From: Epithemia pelagica
Lineage: Eukaryota > Protista > Bacillariophyta
Direction: 5' to 3'
NCBI GenBank assembly: GCA_946965045.2
Contig: OX337235.1
Span: forward strand, 1,426,001-1,490,000
Length of the DNA stretch: 64,000 nt
Shown in pieces: positions 9,971 to 58,207 of the stretch (within the stretch, counting starts at the first letter, position 1; the number at the start of each line of letters is the position of its first letter). The notes beneath the pieces are model-generated. The model worked only from the letters and a program-made list of their open reading frames with translations. It was not told the origin of the DNA and did no database searches. A program made the position numbers and the translations under genes.

Positions 9971-10417
9971 GCTATTCAAGGAAGCGAATTTCAGGGGCAA
10001 AGAATCTCAACGAAAGGATCACCGAGTGGTACTGTCACCTCTCTCAGGTCGAATCTGATAACTTGCTCAGCCTTTGATGCAGATCGACCTGATTCTTTTG
10101 GCAACAAGAGAAGTTTGCCCGACGGTCGAATAATCAGAAACAGCAACGTCCATTGCTGTCGCTCCTTGTCGGGTTTGAGCTGTCTGTTGTTGACTCGTTG
10201 CAACAGAAGCGACCAGAAGAGATGACGACAGCAAAGAATACTTCTTTCGCTAGGAATATCGACGGCGGAGACAGAAGGCATAGCAGTATAGACACCACTT
10301 CAAAACTAACTCCATACCAGACTGTGTAGGTAGTTCGTCTCACATTTTTATACTACAGTATGAATTTATTGTACGACCGGGAAGTAGTTTCGTGCGAGTC
10401 GCGCGGTGTCCCTCTCG

Positions 10418-10458
10418 TGTGTGACACTTGTGCGACACTTGTGTGACACTTTGTGACA
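10418..10458. repeat. Four short TG(T/C)GACA(CT) repeats in the mini-element body (also ~10804-10844)
   Basis: gtgtgacacttgtgcgacacttgtgtgacactttgtgaca read directly. Confidence 0.8.
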
Positions 10459-10511
10459 TGGCTTCTAGGAATTTCTCACTACCTACACAGCTTGATAGGG
10501 AGTAAGTTTAC

Positions 10512-10685
10512 TACTTCCCTGTGTCTGGCCGTCCTCTCGCGTCGGGCGCGCCCGGCTTGTCGGGAGAATGACTCGACGGGCAATTGTCTTGTCGGGCGTG
10601 CGCCCTCCTCGGCCATTGCCCTCCTCGTCATTCTACCCTCCGCGCCGGGCGGTCCCTCCTTGAAAGGACTCGACACCGGGAAGTA
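10512..10685. repeat. Modular imperfect hairpin of mini-element copy 1 (copy 2: 10898-11071)
   Basis: Nested inverted pairs tacttccctgtgtc/gacaccgggaagta, cgcccggc/gccgggcg, agaatgac/gtcattct and gggcaat/attgccc. Confidence 0.85.
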
Positions 10686-11702
10686 TTAATACTAACTCCA
10701 TACCAGACTGTGTAGGTAGTTCGTCTCACATTTTTATACTACAGTAGGAATTTATTGTACGACCGGGAAGTAGTTTCGTGCGAGTCGCGCGGTGTCCCTC
10801 TCGTGTGTGACACTTGTGCGACACTTGTGTGACACTTTGTGACATGGCTTCTAGGAATTTCTCACTACCTACACAGCTTGATAGGGAGTAAGTTTACTAC
10901 TTCCCTGTGTCTGGCCGTCCTCTCGCGTCGGGCGCGCCCGGCTTGTCGGGAGAATGACTCGACGGGCAATTGTCTTGTCGGGCGTGCGCCCTCCTCGGCC
11001 ATTGCCCTCCTCGTCATTCTACCCTCCGCGCCGGGCGGTCCCTCCTTGAAAGGACTCGACACCGGGAAGTATTAATACTACCTACCATCTCTTATCTCGC
11101 TCTAGTAGGAGTAGGAGTAGGTAGGAGTACGATTTACTCCTAACTCCATACCTCTAGCTATGCAGGTAGTTCTGCTCACATTTTTATAGTAGAGTACGAT
11201 ATTATTGTACAAGCGGGAGGTAGTAATTACCGAAAATTCGCGCGATTCGCGCACAAACACGCCGGGCGAGCAAACCAAGGGGAAAGAGCGCACCACGAAA
11301 AACGGACGCAACGATGGCAACGACGATACCAACAATACACGAAGCGAGAGACAAGTATAAGAAAGAGCAAGTTGAATGTGAGAATAGGCACAAAAACAGC
11401 AATCAAACAGTATTCGAGACAAGTGAGTACTTACAGTTCTAGAAGGATCAACCATTGAATAATGGGATCACTGTGAATGCAACAGACAATTGGTTAGTCA
11501 AACAAGACAGAGGAAGGTCGAAAATACAGCCATGGTTACTCACCATACCAGCAACTAGGGCGACTGTTGGAAGAAGTAGAAAATACTGATAGTGGACAGT
11601 AGCAGCACTGTAAGTCTGTGCAAATAAGAAAAAGTTTGTGAGAAAAACATGAACATACAAAACAAACAAGCAGCAGGTGACGAAAACTCACCACCCAACC
11701 CA

Positions 11703-14700
11703 TCAAGAAGACCTTTTCTTGTGGGATTTCTTGTACTTGCGTGGATGGGAGGGCTGTTGGAACTGAACAGGTTGAAAATGGGGCTGCTGGATCATGGTTT
11801 GTTGCATGGTGGTCGGCATGATGGAAGGCTGTTGTGCGTAGTTCGGAGCAACCATCCCAAACTGCATTGAGGTCGTAGGCATGTACGGTTGTTGCATAAA
11901 CCCATTCATCATGGGCTGCTGTGTAGGGTAGGTGGGTTGCAACATCGTCGGCATTGGAGCAAGTGCTGGTTGTTGTTGTTGTTGTGTTACGATGAAAGAC
12001 GAGGGTTGTTGTTGTTGTGGGATGAAGGTAGGAGCAATCATACCATTCGAGCGGAACCCACCGTGTGGAGAATACATGGATGACGATGACGATGACAAAG
12101 AAGTGGGGGTGTTGCATTGAGGCATGTGCGAGGCGACAACTGACTTCGGCGGCTTCTTCTTTGGAGGAGGAGCCTGGGACTCAATCATGTTCGAGGCTTG
12201 TTGGCTGTTGGTGCCAAAAGCCTCCCAGTCAAATCCTTTGAAGAGAGAATCCGTCAAATCATCATCTTCTTCTAGAGTCAATGGTTGGAAAACTGCAGAC
12301 AACGCCTTCTTCTCGTGGTGAGACTTTGGTTTCGTTTCCACGGGTTCTGAAAAGAAAACAGAAGAATGAGAGAAGAAACAACGATAGCAATCAACCAAAA
12401 AATGGACTTACCTTGTTTGACTGTGACAGGCGAGGCATCGTTATACCAGTTTGCTTTTAAGACCGCGGCGTAGGATTCCGGTCCAAACTCTTGGTATGCA
12501 AAGTTTGCCTCATCAGTCTTGTGGCGTCCGAATTTGTTCACGATCTTTTGTGGAGCACCAGATTGTGCCACGTTGGAGATTCCGGTACGGCGGCCCGTCC
12601 GCGCAGTCGTTCGTTTCCAGTCTTCTAAGCCGCACCTCTTGAAGAGGAGCTTGGCATTTTCGTTCGGCCAGTTCTTGCCGAGTTGACCGATTGGGCGTGT
12701 CGGAGGCGGTCCTGTGAAACCATTTGCGACTGCTTTGTTGTAGCGAGCCATGGTTTCTTTCGACGTGTCTCGCACCAACATGGTGCCAGCCCACCACTTG
12801 TCATTCGCAGGAGAGGGACGAGCCTTGCGTTCCTTGTCCGAAGCAATATTGAGAAACAGTAGACCCGTCCAGCCAGGAGGTAGGGCGTGCTCGATCCAGT
12901 ACTGGAGTAATTTGTACGTGGACCACGGGTCGTCGGGGTTGTCGACAATCATATTGAGCTCGCGCCCGTCTTCAGCGTCAAGAGTGGGGTTATTCAATGA
13001 CAGCTTCGAGCATTTCTCGCGGCTACACTCTTTGAGTTTGTACGCGGGTAGGCCCGCCAACGAGCCATACTCCTCTGAAAGTGCGGGGATGTGGACTAAG
13101 TCTGCAACTCTAACTTTACAGGTCTGTAAGAAACGAGGCAAAAAACGTGAGAAATCACATGTCCGAAGAAACCAAACCAACAATCAGACAGTACTAACCT
13201 CGATGGTACCACGTGGACCGAAATCACGTTGGAACTTATAAACTACTAGTCGTAAAAGGTCGATGGGGACCGAAAAAGGATTCAGTTTCGGGTTTGCCTT
13301 GTTCCGAAACAGGTACTCGTCATTCTGCACAATCTTGGCTTTCTTCGGGCGGCGACCATAGTCCGGACGAGCCTCGGACTCTTCTTCAAACTGCTTTTTG
13401 CAATAAGCATGGTATGAACGGGGCAGGTTTTGAAGATCCAGACTCCCGTACTGAATGCCGTTGGTATGAAGCACAGAGAACACATGGTCCAGCATCTTTT
13501 TCAAAGCGTTCGGTTGATACACCTGCCCGGCCTTGGTGTACAGATTCAAGACGAAAACGTAAAGTACAAGATTCAGACACTTTGCTTTCTCCGGGGTCTT
13601 GTATCCTCGCAACAACGTAAAAAGACGGAGGGTTTGCTTTGATGGGTTATCAGGATCGGCGATGACTTCGGTGAGTTTGTGTAAGTCTTGATGTCGGGCC
13701 ATGATGTTCAGAAAGCGTTCGAATGTTCTTGCCTTCTCCCGCTCATACCCTGCCGTGTTCATTGACAGGTCAGAGAAATTTACGTTGCGAGCCCCGTCTC
13801 CATAGACGCGCTCGTTCGAGATCGTGGCATAAGAGGCCCATGCCTCAAGATCGTCGGGGGTATTGACTACCTCGGGTAGCGAGTTGCTCGAAAGGAAGTC
13901 AAAGGTCACCCGCCCTGTTGCTTCGTCGACAACAAGGGTGGACCGAGAAGACGCAGCTTGGGCAGCCATCTTTAGAGAGGGAGCAATGGGAACGGACGTT
14001 TCATTGGGAGGCACTTGCATCGACGCCCTGCAAAACACAGCAATCAACGAGACAGTTAGAACAGGAAGAAACATACAGACAATCCACTGCAAGTCAAAAC
14101 CAACGTACTGAGGGGCCACATTCGGAGCGATGGGAACGGAGGTTCCATTGGGAGGCAGAACAGAGGTTTCATTGGGAGGCGGAACGGAGGTTCCATTGGG
14201 AGGCACTTGCATGGACGCCCTGCAAAGCACATCAATCAACGAGACAGTTAGAACTGGATGAACCATGAAAGCAATCCACTAATGCAAAGCAAAGTCAACG
14301 TACTGAGGGGCCACAGCAATGGATTCCACATTCGGAGCTTCCAAAGTTCCAACAGGAAGAACAGCATCCCTGCAATACGAACAATCAAACAGAGTGAGAT
14401 GGGAACATGACAATACACAAAGAAACAACAATCATCAGTGACTTCTTACCAGTTCTGAGGAGGTTCGGACAGAGGAACCGGTGCAGGTTTCTTGTTCCCC
14501 TGTTTTGGAACAGGGATGTTGACGGATCGTTTCTGGAGGAGCGATGACAAAGGGTTGCTTTTCTTGCAAACAGTCGACGCAGCCTTGCTGGATTGACGAG
14601 TCTTTACAGCAGCAGGACGATGAGGCGGTGCGTTCTCCTTGTTTGCGGCGGCGGCGGCAGCGGCTTTGTTAGCGTTGCGAGTCTTCATGGCGAGCTTCCT

Positions 14701-15099
14701 TCTGCTTATCAAATGACACAACAAATGAGAAATGAGAAATGACAGGAAGAATGAGGATCGGTGTGACGGTCGAAGGAAATTTGAATCGGTAAGTGCGACC
14801 GGGAAGATTTCGACGCGAAAAGGAAGACGACCATGGTCGAAATTGACGAAAAACGGGCCAACGAGCAAGAACAAATACGACAATCAAACAAAAACTTACA
14901 GTTTGCTCGACCTTTTGAGCATCCAGGAGTCAGAGGAGTTACTGTGCTCCTCTGAGCTCCCAGTGCAAAGATCAATCCGCTCAACCCACCTTCCTTCCCA
15001 ATTGTTCATGTTCTCGGGTTCGTCAAAGAGGTACATGTAGGAAGTTGACGAGTCCGAAGACTCAGAATCAGACTCCGAGACCAAATCAATGATGTTCAT
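11703..15099 (-). CDS. Tyrosine recombinase (Crypton/DUF3504-like), 7 exons, ~937 aa, Q-rich C-terminal tail
   Basis: Phase-consistent GT-AG introns at 14702-14899, 14370-14449, 14220-14303, 14028-14108, 13124-13198 and 12347-12411. Catalytic-type motifs: GPRG (R), ARTGRRTG (HxxR position), FGRHKT (H/W) and NFAYQE (Y). The start may instead be ATG 14688 (MKTRN). Confidence 0.8.
14028..14305 (-). repeat. Tandem duplication of an intron+exon unit (~192 bp period) inside the recombinase gene
   Basis: Introns 14028-14108 and 14220-14303 share long stretches (caatcaacgagacagttagaac, caacgtactgaggggccaca). Both downstream exons begin ASMQVPPN(G/E)TSVP. Confidence 0.85.
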
Positions 15100-15387
15100 G
15101 CTATTATACACACCAATCAAACACTATTCTATAGGAAGAGAGCCACTTGGAATGGTAATGCCATTGCTGTCGGTCTTCCTTCCTAATTTCCGGATCGAGA
15201 GGAAAGGGAGGTCGACGAGATCTCTGGGGACTGGGGCCTATATAATCCGAGGAACGGAAGGTTTTAAAATTACTTAGAGACGAAAATTTCCTATGCGACT
15301 TCCAAATTTCATCAACGGACATGTCCTCTCTATTAAATATAGAGAGGTGAGCAGAACTACCTGCATATCTAGGTATGGAGTAAGCAG

Positions 15388-15563
15388 AATACTCCCCTGT
15401 ATTTTTCAGTCCTTTCTCGTCGGGCGCCCGGCTAGTCGGGAGAATGACTCGTCGGGCACGTGTCTTGTCGGGCATGCGCCCTCCGTGCCACGTGCCCTCC
15501 TCGTCATTCTACCCTCCACGCCGGGCGACCCTCCTCAAAAGGACTGATATACCGTGAAGTATT
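15388..15563. repeat. Modular terminal hairpin of the autonomous element
   Basis: GTCGGG at 15419, 15435, 15451, 15467 and CCCTCC at 15479, 15495, 15512, 15529; the spacers on the two arms are reverse complements. Confidence 0.9.
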
Positions 15564-16058
15564 CCTACTACTCCTAGGAGTACGAATTACGAATACCTTT
15601 CTGAAGAGGAAGAGCAACTTACCATTTTAGTAGATTAAATACTCCTAGGAGAAGCATTACTACGAGCATGGTGAGCACGAAATGTCGATCAATCTAGTAT
15701 TCTGTGTTCTGAGAAAGTAAAAGAAGGGCACCTGAGATTGCCTCTATGTTTGACTTGGACTCACAACGTGCCAGTCAAGGGAACCACTGGCGCTTTACAA
15801 CTGACTTTAGCGTGTTGCTGTCTCCGTGCATACAAACTATCATTCTCATCTACGTGTTCACCTTCCCTCCATAAATGTTGTAGGACTTGAAAATATTATA
15901 GGAGTATTCGTCCTGACCAGTCAATACGACGTTTGGACCTACGAGTTCTGGTTCTAAATTCGAGCTTGTCCCAATGACGACGATGCGTCGACACACGCAT
16001 ACGCAAGTGAAGCGTTCTATCTTCTATAGCGTTGAATGTCAACCCCAAGCTGAACAAA

Positions 16059-28762: not shown

Positions 28763-29656
28763 TTAAGAGATAGCGACTGGTGCAGTGTGGCGATATTCGA
28801 CACATCCGCTGTCATCACTTGGTCCTTGATATCCCCAAGTCTCACGACGATTCTCCAGGCCCAAGGAGCGACGAGACAGGAAAAGAATCCATCTCAAAGG
28901 TTTTGACTGGCCAACCAGGTTCGAAGCAAAAGTCAAGCATGAGCTTCTGGCCACGCTCAAACGCTCGGGAAAATCGTCCAGTCCAAACAGGATATCAACG
29001 CGGTTCTGGTTGCCGTTGTAGTAAACGCTGCAATGGACATCCTCGCTGCCAAACCACTCCAGAGCAAACTCCGCAAAGCGAGATAGAGGGGAGGAAGCTC
29101 CTGGCTTGAGTTGCACATACCCGCTAAGATTTTCTACCTGTAAATCCCTCTGGCGAACAATGGGTACTGCTACCGAGTACCCATTGTTCGCCAGAGGGAT
29201 TTGCAGGTAGAAAATCTTGTGCGAGCCCTTCACTTTCGATCCAATACGGGGAAAGGAATTGTACCAGTGTCCATCGTGGAAGTACTGAACTTCGAGTTCG
29301 TGATTATTAGCGCTGTTGCGAACGCTCGACCGGGACAGGGACGTGGTAAAAAAATTACCATTGTCTGCTTTTTTTACTGTGTCCAACCAGGAGTCAAAGA
29401 TCTCCGCCAAATACTTGCGTTCGAATTTGACTTTTTGAGAGTCTGAGAGGCTTGTGTCATTCGTAAGAGACAAACGAATTGGCGGGCTAGGAATCTCCAA
29501 ACCAAGCATGTCCCTGGTCCACACCGGAAACCCCACGAATTGAACAAACTGTGCATGTTCCTCCGCATCAAAAACACTGCGGTAATGCTCATACCATTCT
29601 CTCTGTCGCTTCTGCTCTTCCGTCTCCTTCTGGGTGTCACTCTCCAAACTCATCAT
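28763..29656 (-). CDS. Hypothetical protein
   Basis: Long ORF with globular-looking composition; first ATG at 29656; no motif recognised. Confidence 0.5.
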   Translation of the reverse strand: MMSLESDTQKETEEQKRQREWYEHYRSVFDAEEHAQFVQFVGFPVWTRDMLGLEIPSPPIRLSLTNDTSLSDSQKVKFERKYLAEIFDSWLDTVKKADNGNFFTTSLSRSSVRNSANNHELEVQYFHDGHWYNSFPRIGSKVKGSHKIFYLQIPLANNGYSVAVPIVRQRDLQVENLSGYVQLKPGASSPLSRFAEFALEWFGSEDVHCSVYYNGNQNRVDILFGLDDFPERLSVARSSCLTFASNLVGQSKPLRWILFLSRRSLGLENRRETWGYQGPSDDSGCVEYRHTAPVAIS

Positions 29657-51764: not shown

Positions 51765-52946
51765 TCACGCTTCGTTTTCCTCCTCCATGATTCTTGGCTG
51801 TTCGGTTTCCTCCACCATGATTCTTGGCTGTTCGGTTTCCTCCACCATGATTCTTGGCTGTTCGGTTTCCTCCACCATGATTCTTTGCTCTGCGATTTGA
51901 TTGGAGGTGGTGCCATCTACATCCTCTTGATCGGCCATACTACTATCCTCCTCGCCTCTTTGCTGGCCGTTTTCCACCCTCTCGAGATCATCGTCGTCTG
52001 CACGATGATCCGGACTGTGTGCAGAGTCCCCAGTTTCCAAAGAGCTATTTTCCAAAGTTGTGTAGTTCCCTCCATCACATTGACTCCCTCGCATCTTTTC
52101 CAACTCACTTCGCGTTGGTTCACTTGTGGCAATTTCCATCAACTGTTGCCACTCCGATTGTGGGATATGGGATGGTCGTGTATCGGGCAGATAGACCACA
52201 CCATGTTCCGAGCAATAGAAACAGGGCCGCGTTCTCAGATTCATGGCCGACACCAGTGTATTGACCTGCTTGAGTGCCATGGCACTGTTGGTGATTCTTC
52301 CACTTCTCGACCTCCGCAATGTGTCTTTATCAATGGGAAGGAAATCGGTTCGGCAAAAGGGACAGCCTTCGTTCTGTAACAACCATTCCTTGATACATGC
52401 ATGATGAAAGACATGATTGCAGGATGGATTGGGCGACCACGAGACAATGTCACCAATGGACAATTCATCGTAGCAAATCGGACATTCCCCTCCATTACTG
52501 CAGGTCTGACTTTCCGATATCGTTGAAGAACCATTTTCTTCATCCGACTCTTCCATGCCGACTGTATCCACAGTCAATGTTCGTTCCTTCAAGTACTTGG
52601 CCCGACGCTGTTGTGCCGTCTCGGAAGATGAACCACCGCAAACGGAAGAACAGAGACTTTCTTCATGACGTTGAATTTTCCGTGAGATGATCCAGGATTC
52701 AACTTGACTGTACCGCGATGCATTGCAGGCACTTGTTGTGGTGGGGGTATCTTGGGGTCGAGCCAGAGTGACGGCACCTGCTCGAGCGGCAGCCATTCGA
52801 CGTTCGAATCGTCGTCGTCTTCGACACCGTGAAATACAAATGGCCATAAAACAAACTCCAATTACGGCAATCGCAAAGCTGGCCATTAAAAGGGCACCCA
52901 AGGGCGAAATTCCTTGTTCCTCGTCCTCCTTGTCGGTTGTTGCCAC
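51765..52946 (-). CDS. TM + RING-H2 E3 ubiquitin ligase (ATL-like); 5' end uncertain
   Basis: CPICYDELSIGDIVSWSPNPSCNHVFHHACIKEWLLQNEGCPFCR. The ORF begins at GTG with no nearby in-frame upstream ATG. Confidence 0.85.
   Translation of the reverse strand: MATTDKEDEEQGISPLGALLMASFAIAVIGVCFMAICISRCRRRRRFERRMAAARAGAVTLARPQDTPTTTSACNASRYSQVESWIISRKIQRHEESLCSSVCGGSSSETAQQRRAKYLKERTLTVDTVGMEESDEENGSSTISESQTCSNGGECPICYDELSIGDIVSWSPNPSCNHVFHHACIKEWLLQNEGCPFCRTDFLPIDKDTLRRSRSGRITNSAMALKQVNTLVSAMNLRTRPCFYCSEHGVVYLPDTRPSHIPQSEWQQLMEIATSEPTRSELEKMRGSQCDGGNYTTLENSSLETGDSAHSPDHRADDDDLERVENGQQRGEEDSSMADQEDVDGTTSNQIAEQRIMVEETEQPRIMVEETEQPRIMVEETEQPRIMEEENEA
51781..51884. repeat. 30 bp coding tandem repeat (~3.5 copies, RIMVEETEQP)
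   Basis: tccaccatgattcttggctgttcggtttcc repeated with period 30. Confidence 0.9.
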
Positions 52947-53663: not shown

Positions 53664-55373
53664 TTAGATGGATGCAAATAGCGTTGTCTCCGGAAGATCA
53701 TCTTCCGTCGACGGAACAGAGGATACTTCTACGCACTCTTCCCCGTGTTCCAGTGAGCTGTTGGTATCCATCACTCGAGTGACTGTTCCGGATTCGGCCG
53801 CCTCCAATTCATCCACTCGTATTCTTTCTTCTGTATCGGTTGTTGCAACCGCACTCTCTGCCGGATGGTTCCTCTCGTCATCATCATCATTGTGGACTAC
53901 TGAGGTGGGTGATTCGGTGGTTGTAGTAGTGGGTGATGGGGATTTCAAGGGTCCTTCGGGATGATCCCAGCTATCACCGTCCACGCGTTGCGGTGAACTC
54001 CGTGTCGCTGGTTGGTCACAAGGACTAGGACCATTGTCATGGCGTTGGCCTTCCTCATTGTCTACCGAGTGTGGATCGTCAGGATTGAGTTCCACTGTAG
54101 ATGATGAATGAGGAGAAACCACCTCAATCGAATCTAGGGGTTCACTCGTCACGGGCGGCGTTTCCTCGTGGTCCGCATCCTGACTCGACAAGGACAGGAC
54201 GTGCCCCTGGTCGTCGTCATTCTCGTCCTGACTACGATTGGTACTTTCGTCCAGTTCCGAGGATCGATGCAGATAGGTTTTGATGTGATATTCCGTCTTG
54301 CGTTGTTCGGCCAAGGTGGCTCGATCGACGGCCGAAGTGCGCATGCGATGGACCAATTCTTTTAAATCGCGATCGGTACAATTGATGCGAGACGGAACGG
54401 TCAACAAGCCTTGCGTTTGACAAAAGATGGTTGTGGCCGATCGTTGATTGTGTTGCCGTTGAAACTCTTTGAGGCGTTGTTCCTTACTTTCACTCGTTGT
54501 GTTGTTGTTGTCCGTATCGCGGTGGACCAAATCGGTCGGAATACACACTTTGCGACAAAAGGGACACCCAGTATTGCGCAACAACCATTCCTTGATACAT
54601 TTGTGATGAAAGACATGGGAACATTCACTTTCGTTGGGAGAGAAGGTGACAATATCACCCACTTGAAACTCTTCAAAACAAATGGGACATTCCAAAGCCC
54701 CCATGGTCGAACACGTGGGGACAATCTCGTCCAAAAACAAGGATGATGAAGGTTCCAAGTCCGTGGACGACGTTGGTTCCACCGTAGCCATCTCTGTAGT
54801 ACACGGAATACATACAGGTGTCTTGCTGTCGGTAGAAGTCATCTTCTTTTTCTTCTTCTTTTTGGCGGCATGGGTTGGATGACAATATCCGTCTTGTCCA
54901 GGATTCTTCTTTCGTTGGTCGGCCAACACGTGAAGACAGTTTTCGCAGAATTCATCATGTTCCATGACTCGTTTGTTGATCATCCAAACCTCAATGGTTT
55001 CGTATCGTTTTTCAATGCGTTCTCGCAAGGCTTCTTCGTCCAACAAGGTGGGCAACCGTCGTTCTCCACCCAAAAGCTGTTGCATGTGACGACGACGATA
55101 CATCATATGCACCACCAAGAGAATTAAAATAATGGACAGTAACATGAGCAAGGCTGCTAGCATCCACACACCGGCTTTGGTAAAGGTGGCTTCACTCTCT
55201 TCACCACCTTGTTCTTCTCCATTATTGCTGGTTCGAATGGGAGGAAGGCTGGTATGATTTCCTCCTTCAATGGCGTCATTCATTCGACGTAGGGACGACC
55301 GTACTGGCCAGGCTGCGACAGGGTTGGCCCAGTTGCCCATTTGGTACTCGTCGGGGTGATGGGCATTGCTCAT
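53664..55373 (-). CDS. TM + RING-H2 E3 ubiquitin ligase (ATL-like)
   Basis: TM GVWMLAALLMLLSIILILLVV; CPICFEEFQVGDIVTFSP..CSHVFHHKCIKEWLLRNTGCPFCR. First ATG at 55373. Confidence 0.85.
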   Translation of the reverse strand: MSNAHHPDEYQMGNWANPVAAWPVRSSLRRMNDAIEGGNHTSLPPIRTSNNGEEQGGEESEATFTKAGVWMLAALLMLLSIILILLVVHMMYRRRHMQQLLGGERRLPTLLDEEALRERIEKRYETIEVWMINKRVMEHDEFCENCLHVLADQRKKNPGQDGYCHPTHAAKKKKKKKMTSTDSKTPVCIPCTTEMATVEPTSSTDLEPSSSLFLDEIVPTCSTMGALECPICFEEFQVGDIVTFSPNESECSHVFHHKCIKEWLLRNTGCPFCRKVCIPTDLVHRDTDNNNTTSESKEQRLKEFQRQHNQRSATTIFCQTQGLLTVPSRINCTDRDLKELVHRMRTSAVDRATLAEQRKTEYHIKTYLHRSSELDESTNRSQDENDDDQGHVLSLSSQDADHEETPPVTSEPLDSIEVVSPHSSSTVELNPDDPHSVDNEEGQRHDNGPSPCDQPATRSSPQRVDGDSWDHPEGPLKSPSPTTTTTESPTSVVHNDDDDERNHPAESAVATTDTEERIRVDELEAAESGTVTRVMDTNSSLEHGEECVEVSSVPSTEDDLPETTLFASI

Positions 55374-57064: not shown

Positions 57065-58207
57065 TTAAACACTTATTTCATCCATGGGACGACTTTCGTC
57101 GTTGCCAGTGGCAGAACAAGGCATTGGACCCGTGCCACTTGTTGATTGACGTTCGGGAAGTATCAAGGGACGAGCGGATCCTGTGGTACTATCGTCATCC
57201 AAGGAAGATTCGGATGGTTCCTCCGCATCATTGTATTCATTGTTACTGTCAGAACTCGGCTCCATGACTTCCAGGTCTTCAATTTCCGTGTCACCCTCTC
57301 CCATGTCGTCGCACGTCACAGATTCGAGATTCATTCGATTGCCCCGTCGACCAGAAACATCGTGTGGTTCCACGCGACAGGCTGTCGCCGCTTTCAAAAT
57401 TGTAAACATTTCACGACTACACTTGCTGGGTGCCTCAAAGCAAACCAGTCCATCCACGATGCAGTAATATGAGGTGGCAGCCAACTTTGCTCTTTTTCGA
57501 CAAAGTTCTTTTAACACTGGGCGGTCCAAGGGATATCCCTCTTCGTCAATGGGAAGAATCAGTTCACGGCAACACGGACAGTTGCCCGATTGCAACATCC
57601 ACTCCTTTATGCATTCGTGGTGGAATACATGTTTGCATGTCCCGTCAAGATCTGGACTCCACGACACAACATCGTCTACTTTGAACGGTTCCATGCAAAT
57701 TGGACATTCTTTTTCGTCGGAACACGCCTCGACGTCACTATCCGCAGTATGTGCAGTGTCCGAGGAATCAAAGGAAGAGGATACTTTAACAGGTGACGAA
57801 GGACCATCGGATGGGTCATTGGATGATGACCGGTTCATCATCTTTTTTATTTTGTCACAACCAGCCGTATGCGGTTGAACTCTCTGATAATAATGTAGAG
57901 CGATAATCAAAAGCAGGTGAGTTTGGGATCATGGAAGAATGCGTACGGTAGAGGCTCGGGCAAAACTGACCTTGGTAATGAGCCATCCTTCAATGGTTTG
58001 ATAGCGCCGCTCTTTTCGGTCTCCATCGTCCTTGGGCGCTCGTCGTCGACGCCACCAATCGAGAAACGGCGGCATGAGTAAGTAGACAAGGGTGATGAGT
58101 AGTACGACGATCAGTATGACCAAAAGCACAATGACCAGAATATTTCTTTGATTGTATGTCAACAGGGAATTTTCGTGATCACTGCTCCCGCTGTTTCCAG
58201 TTGACAT
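57065..58207 (-). CDS. TM + RING-H2 E3 ubiquitin ligase (ATL-like), 2 exons
   Basis: Exon 1 carries the TM; phase-0 intron 57884-57970; CPICMEPFKVDDVVSWSP...CKHVFHHECIKEWMLQSGNCPCCR. Confidence 0.85.

Follow-up and report, generated by a model that had tools for sequence, protein, structure and literature searches.

Cryptons have been described as transposons without terminal inverted repeats, long repeats or conserved structural features (PMC3212892, PMC3627910, PMC12130899), and the literature that we searched holds no description of hairpin, palindromic or structured Crypton ends like those reported here. The element analysed in this study lies in a stretch of 64,000 nucleotides of DNA (hereafter the window) and resembles Cryptons, and CryptonS in particular, in having a single recombinase gene with the corresponding fold and motifs, in lacking a reverse transcriptase and in residing in a stramenopile host; it also resembles Cryptons in its short terminal direct repeats, here TAG or TAGT. 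CryptonS elements, known from oomycetes and a diatom, have reported TATGG termini (PMC3212892), which the TATGG-containing terminus of the present element resembles; this terminus and the stramenopile-type host are the only indications of an affiliation with CryptonS. What distinguishes the element from Cryptons is a conserved terminal hairpin of about 190 nt (hereafter the rod), together with a palindrome that is split between the two ends and rebuilt when these ends are joined.

Integron attC sites are roughly 60–140 nt in length. The rod resembles attC (IntI, structure 2a3v) in being an imperfect palindrome in which the strand would be chosen via non-Watson-Crick features, in having the crossover at the foot of the stem and a site split between the ends of the integrated unit, and in belonging with a tyrosine recombinase, IntI being among the fold matches described below (Z 8.8). 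It differs from attC in its length of 190–290 nt, in its tandem G.A mismatches, which occupy paired positions and are not extrahelical bases, and, as judged by reading the sequence, in having neither the R''-L''/L'-R' boxes nor the GTTRRRY core; it belongs, moreover, to a eukaryotic, intron-containing element whose recombinase has its nearest fold matches in Cre and Xer, and its use as a single strand is only predicted. An earlier note on this DNA had called the hairpin reminiscent of attC, and the resemblance holds for the palindrome, for the strand asymmetry built from mismatches and for the split crossover site, but it extends to none of the defining sequence features of attC, which is taken here as an analogy and not as a sign of membership.

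In the CTX phage, single-stranded attP(+) forms a forked hairpin that provides a duplex-like target for XerCD, with mismatches in the overlap region. The rod is similar in having a T.T opposition at the first base of TAG; the phage system differs in being bacterial, in using a recombinase of the host and in having a short hairpin. DIRS1-type elements have a tyrosine recombinase and an internal segment complementary to their termini, encode reverse transcriptase and RNase H, and are far longer. The present element is like them in its tyrosine recombinase, in the internal complement of its terminus and in the special structure that arises on joining of the ends, but it contains neither reverse transcriptase nor RNase H and, at 4.4 kb, is too small. 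Other parallels are found in IS200/IS605 and Helitron2 (PMC3627910), whose subterminal hairpins required in cis, terminus complementary to a subterminal segment of the other end, and compensatory changes all recall the element; these systems differ in using HUH/Rep enzymes and short hairpins, and no HUH/Rep gene is present here. The G.A or purine zippers of human satellite III, (GGA)n (PMC11014236), share with the rod the GA/AG steps flanking a G-C pair, or a G.G in one related family (L005, see below); they belong to tandem satellite repeats and not to a transposon end, and the motifs of the rod are known here from the sequence alone.

The element, its recombinase and its mini derivatives

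The autonomous element and its gene have the following features.

11140–15570, minus strand: autonomous Crypton-type element of 4431 bp, with CTA (TAG in gene orientation) on both flanks
13199–14266, minus strand: upstream coding exon, an ORF of 360 aa that ends in recombinase box I (...RDFGPRGTIE), aligned with intron-less relatives
13124–13198, minus strand: intron of 75 nt (GT..AG), from reading of the sequence; it splits the recombinase domain, and relatives are continuous there
12278–13123, minus strand: catalytic exon of the recombinase, with the conserved K, RTGRRT (HxxR position), RH, and Y nine residues downstream

A second autonomous copy (L007:3382-7808) is 99.2% identical over 11140–15571, and because it is nearly identical but has different flanks, the limits of the element can be set at 11140–15570. 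The coding capacity is filled by one intron-containing, multi-exon gene for a tyrosine recombinase. After the intron, the catalytic exon continues with TCKVRVADLVH..., a place at which the intron-less relatives have no break. Box I (GPRGTIE), K, RTGRRT, RH and Y can all be aligned between these relatives and the protein encoded in the window, the H of HxxR being R in the window recombinase. The spacing of the conserved K, RTGRRT, RH and Y is that of R292, W315 and Y324 of Cre.

A family profile search found 164 relatives. An AlphaFold model of one of them, the intron-less P0013 (P0013:470-750), which was built from a 57-sequence alignment headed by P0013, reached a pLDDT of 88.5 and matched the Cre catalytic domain with Z 12.5 over 163 residues (rmsd 3.5 Å). 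XerA/XerH (Z 10.8), the Tn1549 integrase (9.2), IntI (8.8) and Flp (8.7) were also matched, and only tyrosine recombinases and type IB topoisomerases stood at the top of the list of fold matches. The model matched QRICH1 as well (Z 9.0), a protein that carries the Crypton-derived DUF3504 domain. The description of this Crypton-derived domain is that of Kojima and Jurka (PMC3212892). Language-model neighbours of the protein include PF00589 clusters and diatom proteins, and Pfam gave a weak PF00589 match for the relative P0022; no ORF of the element of at least 80 aa matched Pfam, and searches of PDB sequences and PDB profiles with the window recombinase exon found no match to any solved chain. 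There is no HUH/Rep endonuclease ORF in the element, whose sole conserved protein is the recombinase, and the Pfam scan revealed no reverse transcriptase or other transposition enzyme among the ORFs of the 4431-bp element.

Because the modelled relative has the recombinase fold (Cre, Z 12.5) and there is no room for a reverse transcriptase, the element is classified as a Crypton, with the fold match resting on P0013. The profile relatives and the match of the relative's model to Cre bear out the view in the earlier note that this is a tyrosine-recombinase element. As in Cryptons, there is a tyrosine recombinase, no reverse transcriptase, and short terminal direct repeats without a conventional target-site duplication; contrary to the description of Cryptons as having no terminal inverted repeats or structured ends, the element carries the rod, about 190 nt long, and 47 nt of terminal sequence that are repeated in inverted orientation.

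Several repeats were observed apart from these ends. The upstream coding exon contains a 100-nt direct repeat (13989–14088 and 14181–14280, 88% identical, 192 nt apart), through which ...PPNGTSVP... and ...CRASMQVPPN... are repeated in the 360-aa ORF as an internal N-terminal duplication. Elsewhere in the window, a 30-nt unit (TTCGGTTTCCTCCACCATGATTCTTGGCTG) occurs four times in tandem at 51771–51920 and is probably a coding repeat, and a 65-nt segment is found at 52351–52415, 54553–54617 and 57567–57631 (69–100% identical, 2.2 and 3.0 kb apart), the dispersed copies suggesting a small gene family or a repeated exon.

Near the autonomous element lies a pair of mini elements.

10309–11080, minus strand: head-to-tail dimer of a 386-bp non-autonomous mini element, units 10309–10694 and 10695–11080, a perfect duplication

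The rods of the two units lie at about 10498–10694 and 10884–11080, and their box arrays at 10541–10659 and 10927–11045. The mini copy mentioned in the earlier note is present with the same array, but there are two copies arranged as a head-to-tail dimer. The parts that minis have in common with autonomous elements are an 83-nt downstream end and an upstream end of about 216 nt that includes the rod, and nothing else. In the three runs, the k-mer depth of the mini was about two orders of magnitude above that of the flanks, which, depth not being the same as copy number, indicates a high-copy family. An empty site was also found: contigs of two runs skip exactly 772 nt, corresponding to both minis, with a 4-nt overlap ACTA. 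At L002, another mini stands head to tail with an autonomous copy, and this tandem fits a circle integrating into the resident copy's own site, which would give such an arrangement. The Crypton has been recently mobile. Contig joints that go back (15484 to 11027) were considered as evidence of circles and rejected, because their simplest explanation is assembly paths through the shared hairpin repeat.

Other observations concern the middle of the minis and the flanks of the elements. In their middle, the minis have a segment of their own (10405–10458, and 10791–10844), made up of four short GTGTGACACTT-like repeats for which the autonomous element has no counterpart. Between the dimer and the autonomous element lie 62 bp (11078–11139) of degenerate TAGGAGTA-like repeats resembling the element's own terminus, and TAGGAGTACGA(T/A)TTAC is found on both sides of the autonomous element (11078–11139 and 15571–15590). 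A contig in all three runs skips 11127–15590 (4464 nt), which is 33 nt beyond the length of the element and could reflect an old footprint, a divergent allele or a paralogous site.

Architecture of the rod and the junction of the ends

The structured upstream end and its partner at the other terminus are as follows.

15419–15534, minus strand: four-module core, four GGAGGG facing four CCCGAC, with GAGGA/GACGA loops in modules 1 and 3
15380–15570, minus strand: complete rod as present in the integrated autonomous copy, from the fold and the arm-against-arm alignment
15338–15384, no strand assigned: inner arm of the split palindrome, an inverted BLAST match to 11140–11186 that can pair with it only once the ends are joined
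11140–11186, no strand assigned: downstream terminus (in gene orientation) and outer arm of the split palindrome, ending in ...GGAGT-TAG

Read on the plus strand, four GTCGGG boxes (starting at 15419, 15435, 15451 and 15467) and four CCCTCC boxes (starting at 15479, 15495, 15512 and 15529) occupy 15419–15534 with a period of 16–17 nt, just as the earlier note had described, and the spacer pairings that it named are present. Such box pairs occur far above chance: in the window, GTCGGG-N8-14-GTCGGG has 5 matches against 0.04 expected and CCCTCC-N8-14-CCCTCC has 9 against 0.01, and every GTCGGG or CCCTCC pair lies within one of three hairpin copies (15419–15534, 10541–10659 and 10927–11045). The minus strand is the sense strand of the element's gene, and the boxes there read GGAGGG/CCCGAC; in gene orientation, four GGAGGG face four CCCGAC in every copy.

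Folding had been suggested as a check of the hairpin. As single-stranded DNA, and under a nearest-neighbour energy model that has no explicit treatment of tandem G.A, the 141-nt core (15405–15545) folds with −40.6 kcal/mol on the plus strand and −44.6 kcal/mol on the minus strand (z −6.9 and −7.8 against shuffled sequence), and the mini copy folds more weakly (z −2.5 and −2.1). The full fold-back on the minus strand runs from about 15380 to 15570 (about 190 nt) and reaches −57 kcal/mol with z −8.75 (fold of 15355–15573, minus strand), so that the limits of 15388–15563 assigned previously are too short. This rod spans from the terminal TAG (CTA on the plus strand, 15568–15570) to an invariant CTTACTCC segment near 15380, and an alignment of arm against arm gives 68–71 Watson-Crick, 4–5 G.T and 17 G.A pairs.

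Two observations touch on hairpins and their assembly. No hairpin in the window is stronger than that of a 43-nt inverted repeat at 29126–29218, 98% complementary with a 7-nt spacer, which reaches −57.8 kcal/mol when a frame of 160 nt is folded; its sequence is unrelated to the Crypton rods, and it possibly represents a fold-back element or a terminus of some other transposon. In all three runs, 15432 is joined to 15550 by a contig that omits 117 nt of the hairpin core; this joint could stem from a copy elsewhere in the genome that has lost the hairpin, or from the assembly passing through the inverted repeat.

The boxes had been described as pairing only through GGG/CCC and leaving regular bulges. 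Each box in fact pairs through its outer G-C as well as through GGG/CCC, and the mismatch is confined to the middle two bases, which are T.C/C.T on the plus strand and G.A/A.G on the minus strand. In modules 1 and 3, GA dinucleotides lie just outside the boxes too, on both arms, and the "5 × 5 loop" drawn by the folding program is GAGGA over GACGA, that is, tandem G.A, one G-C and tandem G.A; the loop of module 2 is G(T/C)GGA over GAC(T/A)A, and a 4 × 4 loop lies beside the innermost box. The regular bulges, when viewed on the minus strand and not on the plus strand as before, are probably stacked G.A pairs, which one DNA strand alone can form.

All copies, in gene orientation, start with TAG-TAGGAATAC or TAG-TATTAATAC and end with GGAGT-TAG; TAG stands on both sides of every copy, and a single TAG is common to neighbouring tandem copies. 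The last 47 nt of the element (11140–11186) are an inverted repeat of 15338–15384 (47 nt at 89%, BLAST), and because the other terminus is repeated in inverted orientation just inside the rod, joining of the ends lengthens the palindrome. The natural mini–mini junction (10440–10745, minus strand) folds as a single rod, about 245 nt long (z −7.2), whose stem contains TAG; GGAGTTAG lies opposite the invariant CTTACTCC, and a T.T is left at the first base of TAG. Tyrosine recombinases usually need a dyad of 11–13 bp (PMC3212892), and the duplex junction around TAG contains no such dyad, only a weak GGAGT-N10-ACTTC inverted repeat, which could be a duplex core site at the joined ends. The symmetric partner of the TAG-side sequence is the other arm of the rod.

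Conservation, covariation and strand asymmetry

The box array occurs, besides 15419–15534, in the two minis and, at other places of the genome, in five diverged relatives, and the same rod is found in eight copies from at least five sublineages, whose recombinases are 54–82% identical. In the alignment of these eight copies (A1), which represent seven distinct sequences from one assembly of the same genome and, being few and related by descent, give cell counts that are not independent events, 89% of the cells are paired over 76 pairs. Both sides are changed in 13 of the 76 pairs, against 7.0 ± 1.5 in shuffles (0/500) and 2–5 in slid controls, and the covariation that the earlier note had proposed to examine is thus present in these copies. 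The innermost stem occurs as CACGTG/CACGTG, AACAC/GTGTT and CAAT/ATTG, and it changes on both arms between autonomous and mini copies, as had been noticed; six doubly changed pairs are in the outer stem, and the G.A columns are nearly invariant beside the varying stems. These comparisons support the view that the structure of the rod is evolutionarily maintained. The earlier note had gone further and read the compensatory changes as selection on a folded structure; that a structure is maintained stands, but covariation between the arms is not sufficient, because symmetric binding of a protein to the duplex, or gene conversion from arm to arm, gives the same pattern, and the strand-specific G.A bias is needed in addition.

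This bias is seen in several counts. On the minus strand of this copy, the mismatches are 17 G.A versus 1 C.T (binomial p 1.4e-4), and over four rods unrelated in sequence they are 54 G.A, 8 A.A and 6 G.G versus 3 C.T, 3 T.T and 1 C.C. Stem changes on one side only gave G.T in 13 pairs and G.A in 8, versus A.C in 2 and C.T in 1 (21 versus 3; p 2.8e-4), with a small bias towards G.T in that the set of stems was derived from one copy; in a count over whole arms including flanks, G.T is not in excess of A.C. At the middle position of GAGGA/GACGA, the two arms carry complementary and not identical bases, as folding predicts but a direct-repeat binding motif does not. Of the two strands, it is the sense strand that gives the better fold in nine of nine rods, and likewise in L129, L131 and L005. 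As discriminators, the type of mismatch, the one-sided changes and the complementary middle base point to one folded strand.

Rods were also found beyond this family. In the L005/L006 family, whose recombinase is 45% identical, a rod lies at the same relative place with an unrelated stem sequence and with GA loops, namely GAGGA/GAGGA, GAGAA/GACGA and GACGAGGA/GACGAGAA. A separate observation is that the inner rod of L006 (L006:3461-3620) is the reverse complement of L005:3581-3740, with the purine loops on the antisense strand there; the loop GAGAA/GACGA has turned perfectly paired (GAGAA/TTCTC), the recombinase ORF is truncated, and the change looks like an inversion or an arm-templated repair of the palindrome. 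Three more distant relatives come from other samples; all of them matched the family profile, and their identities were measured to the long relative P0013, which served as the alignment reference.

P0038 (L129/L130), about 21–24% to P0013, two metagenome assemblies: rod on the sense strand, with its end about 110 nt upstream of the ATG
P0077 (L131), about 22–25% to P0013, another sample: rod on the sense strand, with loops of the type GACGAGGA/GACGAGGA and z −5.4 versus −3.9 for the antisense strand
P0066 (L132), about 18–19% to P0013, JGI metagenome: hairpin of 23 bp without mismatches, then GA-rich sequence; a clear GA rod is absent

The apex of the P0038 rod is GAGGAGGG-CGAAG-CCCGACGAG, and the L129 and L130 contigs are identical over their overlap. 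The hairpin of L132 (L132:120-182) has a purine-rich loop of 16 nt and lies about 1.5 kb upstream of the recombinase gene. Sense-strand rods with GA loops are accordingly found in two of the three distant relatives from other samples, and because L132 has no GA-zipped rod, the architecture of the end varies within the clade. The GA rod is thus old and widespread in the clade, though perhaps not universal in it. A metagenome-wide search for the pattern GGAGGG-N-GAGGAGGG-N-GGAGGGCG gave at least 120 loci, none of which, among the matches listed, has a facing CCCGAC; these loci are GC-rich chance matches.

Proposed mechanism, rival explanations and significance

We propose with moderate confidence that the rod is the cis-acting recombination-site structure of the Crypton's upstream end, and that it is probably used as a folded single strand. 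On the sense strand, Watson-Crick stems of 8–9 bp would alternate with GGG/CCC clamps and GAGGA/GACGA motifs, so that an almost uninterrupted helix could form from this strand, while its complement would be burdened by destabilising T.C/C.T mismatches. The TAG at which cutting and rejoining would take place is located at the base of the rod. Once a circle or tandem has brought the ends together, the other terminus would pair just inside the rod, giving a palindrome of about 245–290 nt with TAG within the stem; the full site would accordingly be split between the ends and rebuilt on their joining, as attC is between cassette ends. The rod would serve in cis as the recognition and recombination site of the recombinase, which may use it as a folded single strand in the manner of integron attC or CTX-phage attP, with the G.A motifs marking the correct strand and providing regularly spaced protein contacts. 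Candidate sources of single strands in the nucleus are replication and transcription. A wider proposal can be put forward only tentatively, and we regard it as possible but doubtful: a eukaryotic Crypton clade, represented in this diatom-type genome and in unrelated metagenome samples, might transpose via a folded single DNA strand, with the purine-zipped rod as the target of the recombinase. In this proposal, tandem sheared G.A pairs with the period of 16–17 nt would zip the rod on one of the two strands only, and the TAG crossover would be offered to the enzyme within a stem.

Covariation of the arms would equally be predicted if the rod were a duplex platform in which the boxes are arm-type sites, arranged around a centre, for non-catalytic domains of the recombinase or for a host factor, the covariation then arising from symmetric binding or gene conversion; possibly, the palindrome extrudes as a cruciform in the excised circle. 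The conserved boxes at regular spacings of 16–17 bp and the weak inverted repeat around TAG at the joined ends suit such a platform, and tyrosine recombinases bind four-way junctions, of which the base of a cruciform is one. The two types of box, however, are not inverted copies of each other but differ at the same two of six positions in all modules and in nearly all copies, so that a duplex model needs two separate sequence readers, and the biases for G.A over C.T (54 versus 3) and for G.T over A.C (13 versus 2 pairs) are left unexplained. Gene conversion would erase the mismatches, yet they have been kept across lineages with recombinases of 54–82% identity, and in a cruciform the pyrimidine-mismatched strand is costly. 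We therefore consider a duplex or cruciform platform fairly unlikely.

The strand bias itself could be understood if the rod were a structured RNA, namely a 5' leader, transcribed for example only from the joined circle or tandem form, that regulates or assists the recombinase: the purine-rich strand is the gene-sense strand in four of four rod families, the sense strand is with RNA parameters 11–26 kcal/mol more stable than the antisense strand in eight of nine rods, G.U-type states are tolerated, and tandem G.A pairs are common as protein-binding RNA motifs. This leader appears distinctly unlikely to us, because the rod begins at the terminal TAG, so that no internal promoter is possible upstream of it in the integrated form, because minis retain the rod without the gene, because the crossover inside the joined rod ties it to DNA recombination, and because the window segment 10000–16000 had no match in Rfam 15 up to E = 1. 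A search for RNA runs containing the element gave none. Very improbable in our judgement is a rod that the recombinase does not recognise and that is a by-product or directed to the host, as a hairpin serving replication or priming, a precursor of small silencing RNA or a mismatch-protected palindrome; although long palindromes are unstable, mismatches lessen this instability, and mini elements bearing hairpins are typical sources of small RNA, such a role predicts neither one type of mismatch on one strand, nor invariant G.A columns, nor a fixed position of crossover.

Other candidate structures were tried and rejected. A G-quadruplex from the four GGG tracts would have loops of 13–14 nt, and the tracts are absent from other rod families; a protelomerase-like hairpin telomere is at variance with the apex, where a perfect palindrome is not conserved, one lineage having GCATGC and the minis GCACGC; and a flip-flop of the rolling-hairpin type disagrees with the same orientation of eight of eight family copies, a partial inversion being found only in L006 of the other family.

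No class of eukaryotic DNA transposons is less well understood than Cryptons, whose mechanism has been argued by analogy only, and the reported lack of features at their ends has made annotation difficult. The rod offers a structural signature by which Cryptons and the non-autonomous elements derived from them can be found, and it gives a testable hypothesis of substrate recognition, in which a folded single strand is set against a duplex. Natural long DNA helices with periodic tandem G.A pairs also matter to the study of nucleic-acid structure and may prove useful in recombinase engineering. If the rod is indeed used as a folded single strand, it would provide a eukaryotic parallel to the single-strand tyrosine recombination of integrons and filamentous phages (attC and CTX attP), and G.A-zipper DNA would be newly used as a protein-recognition code.
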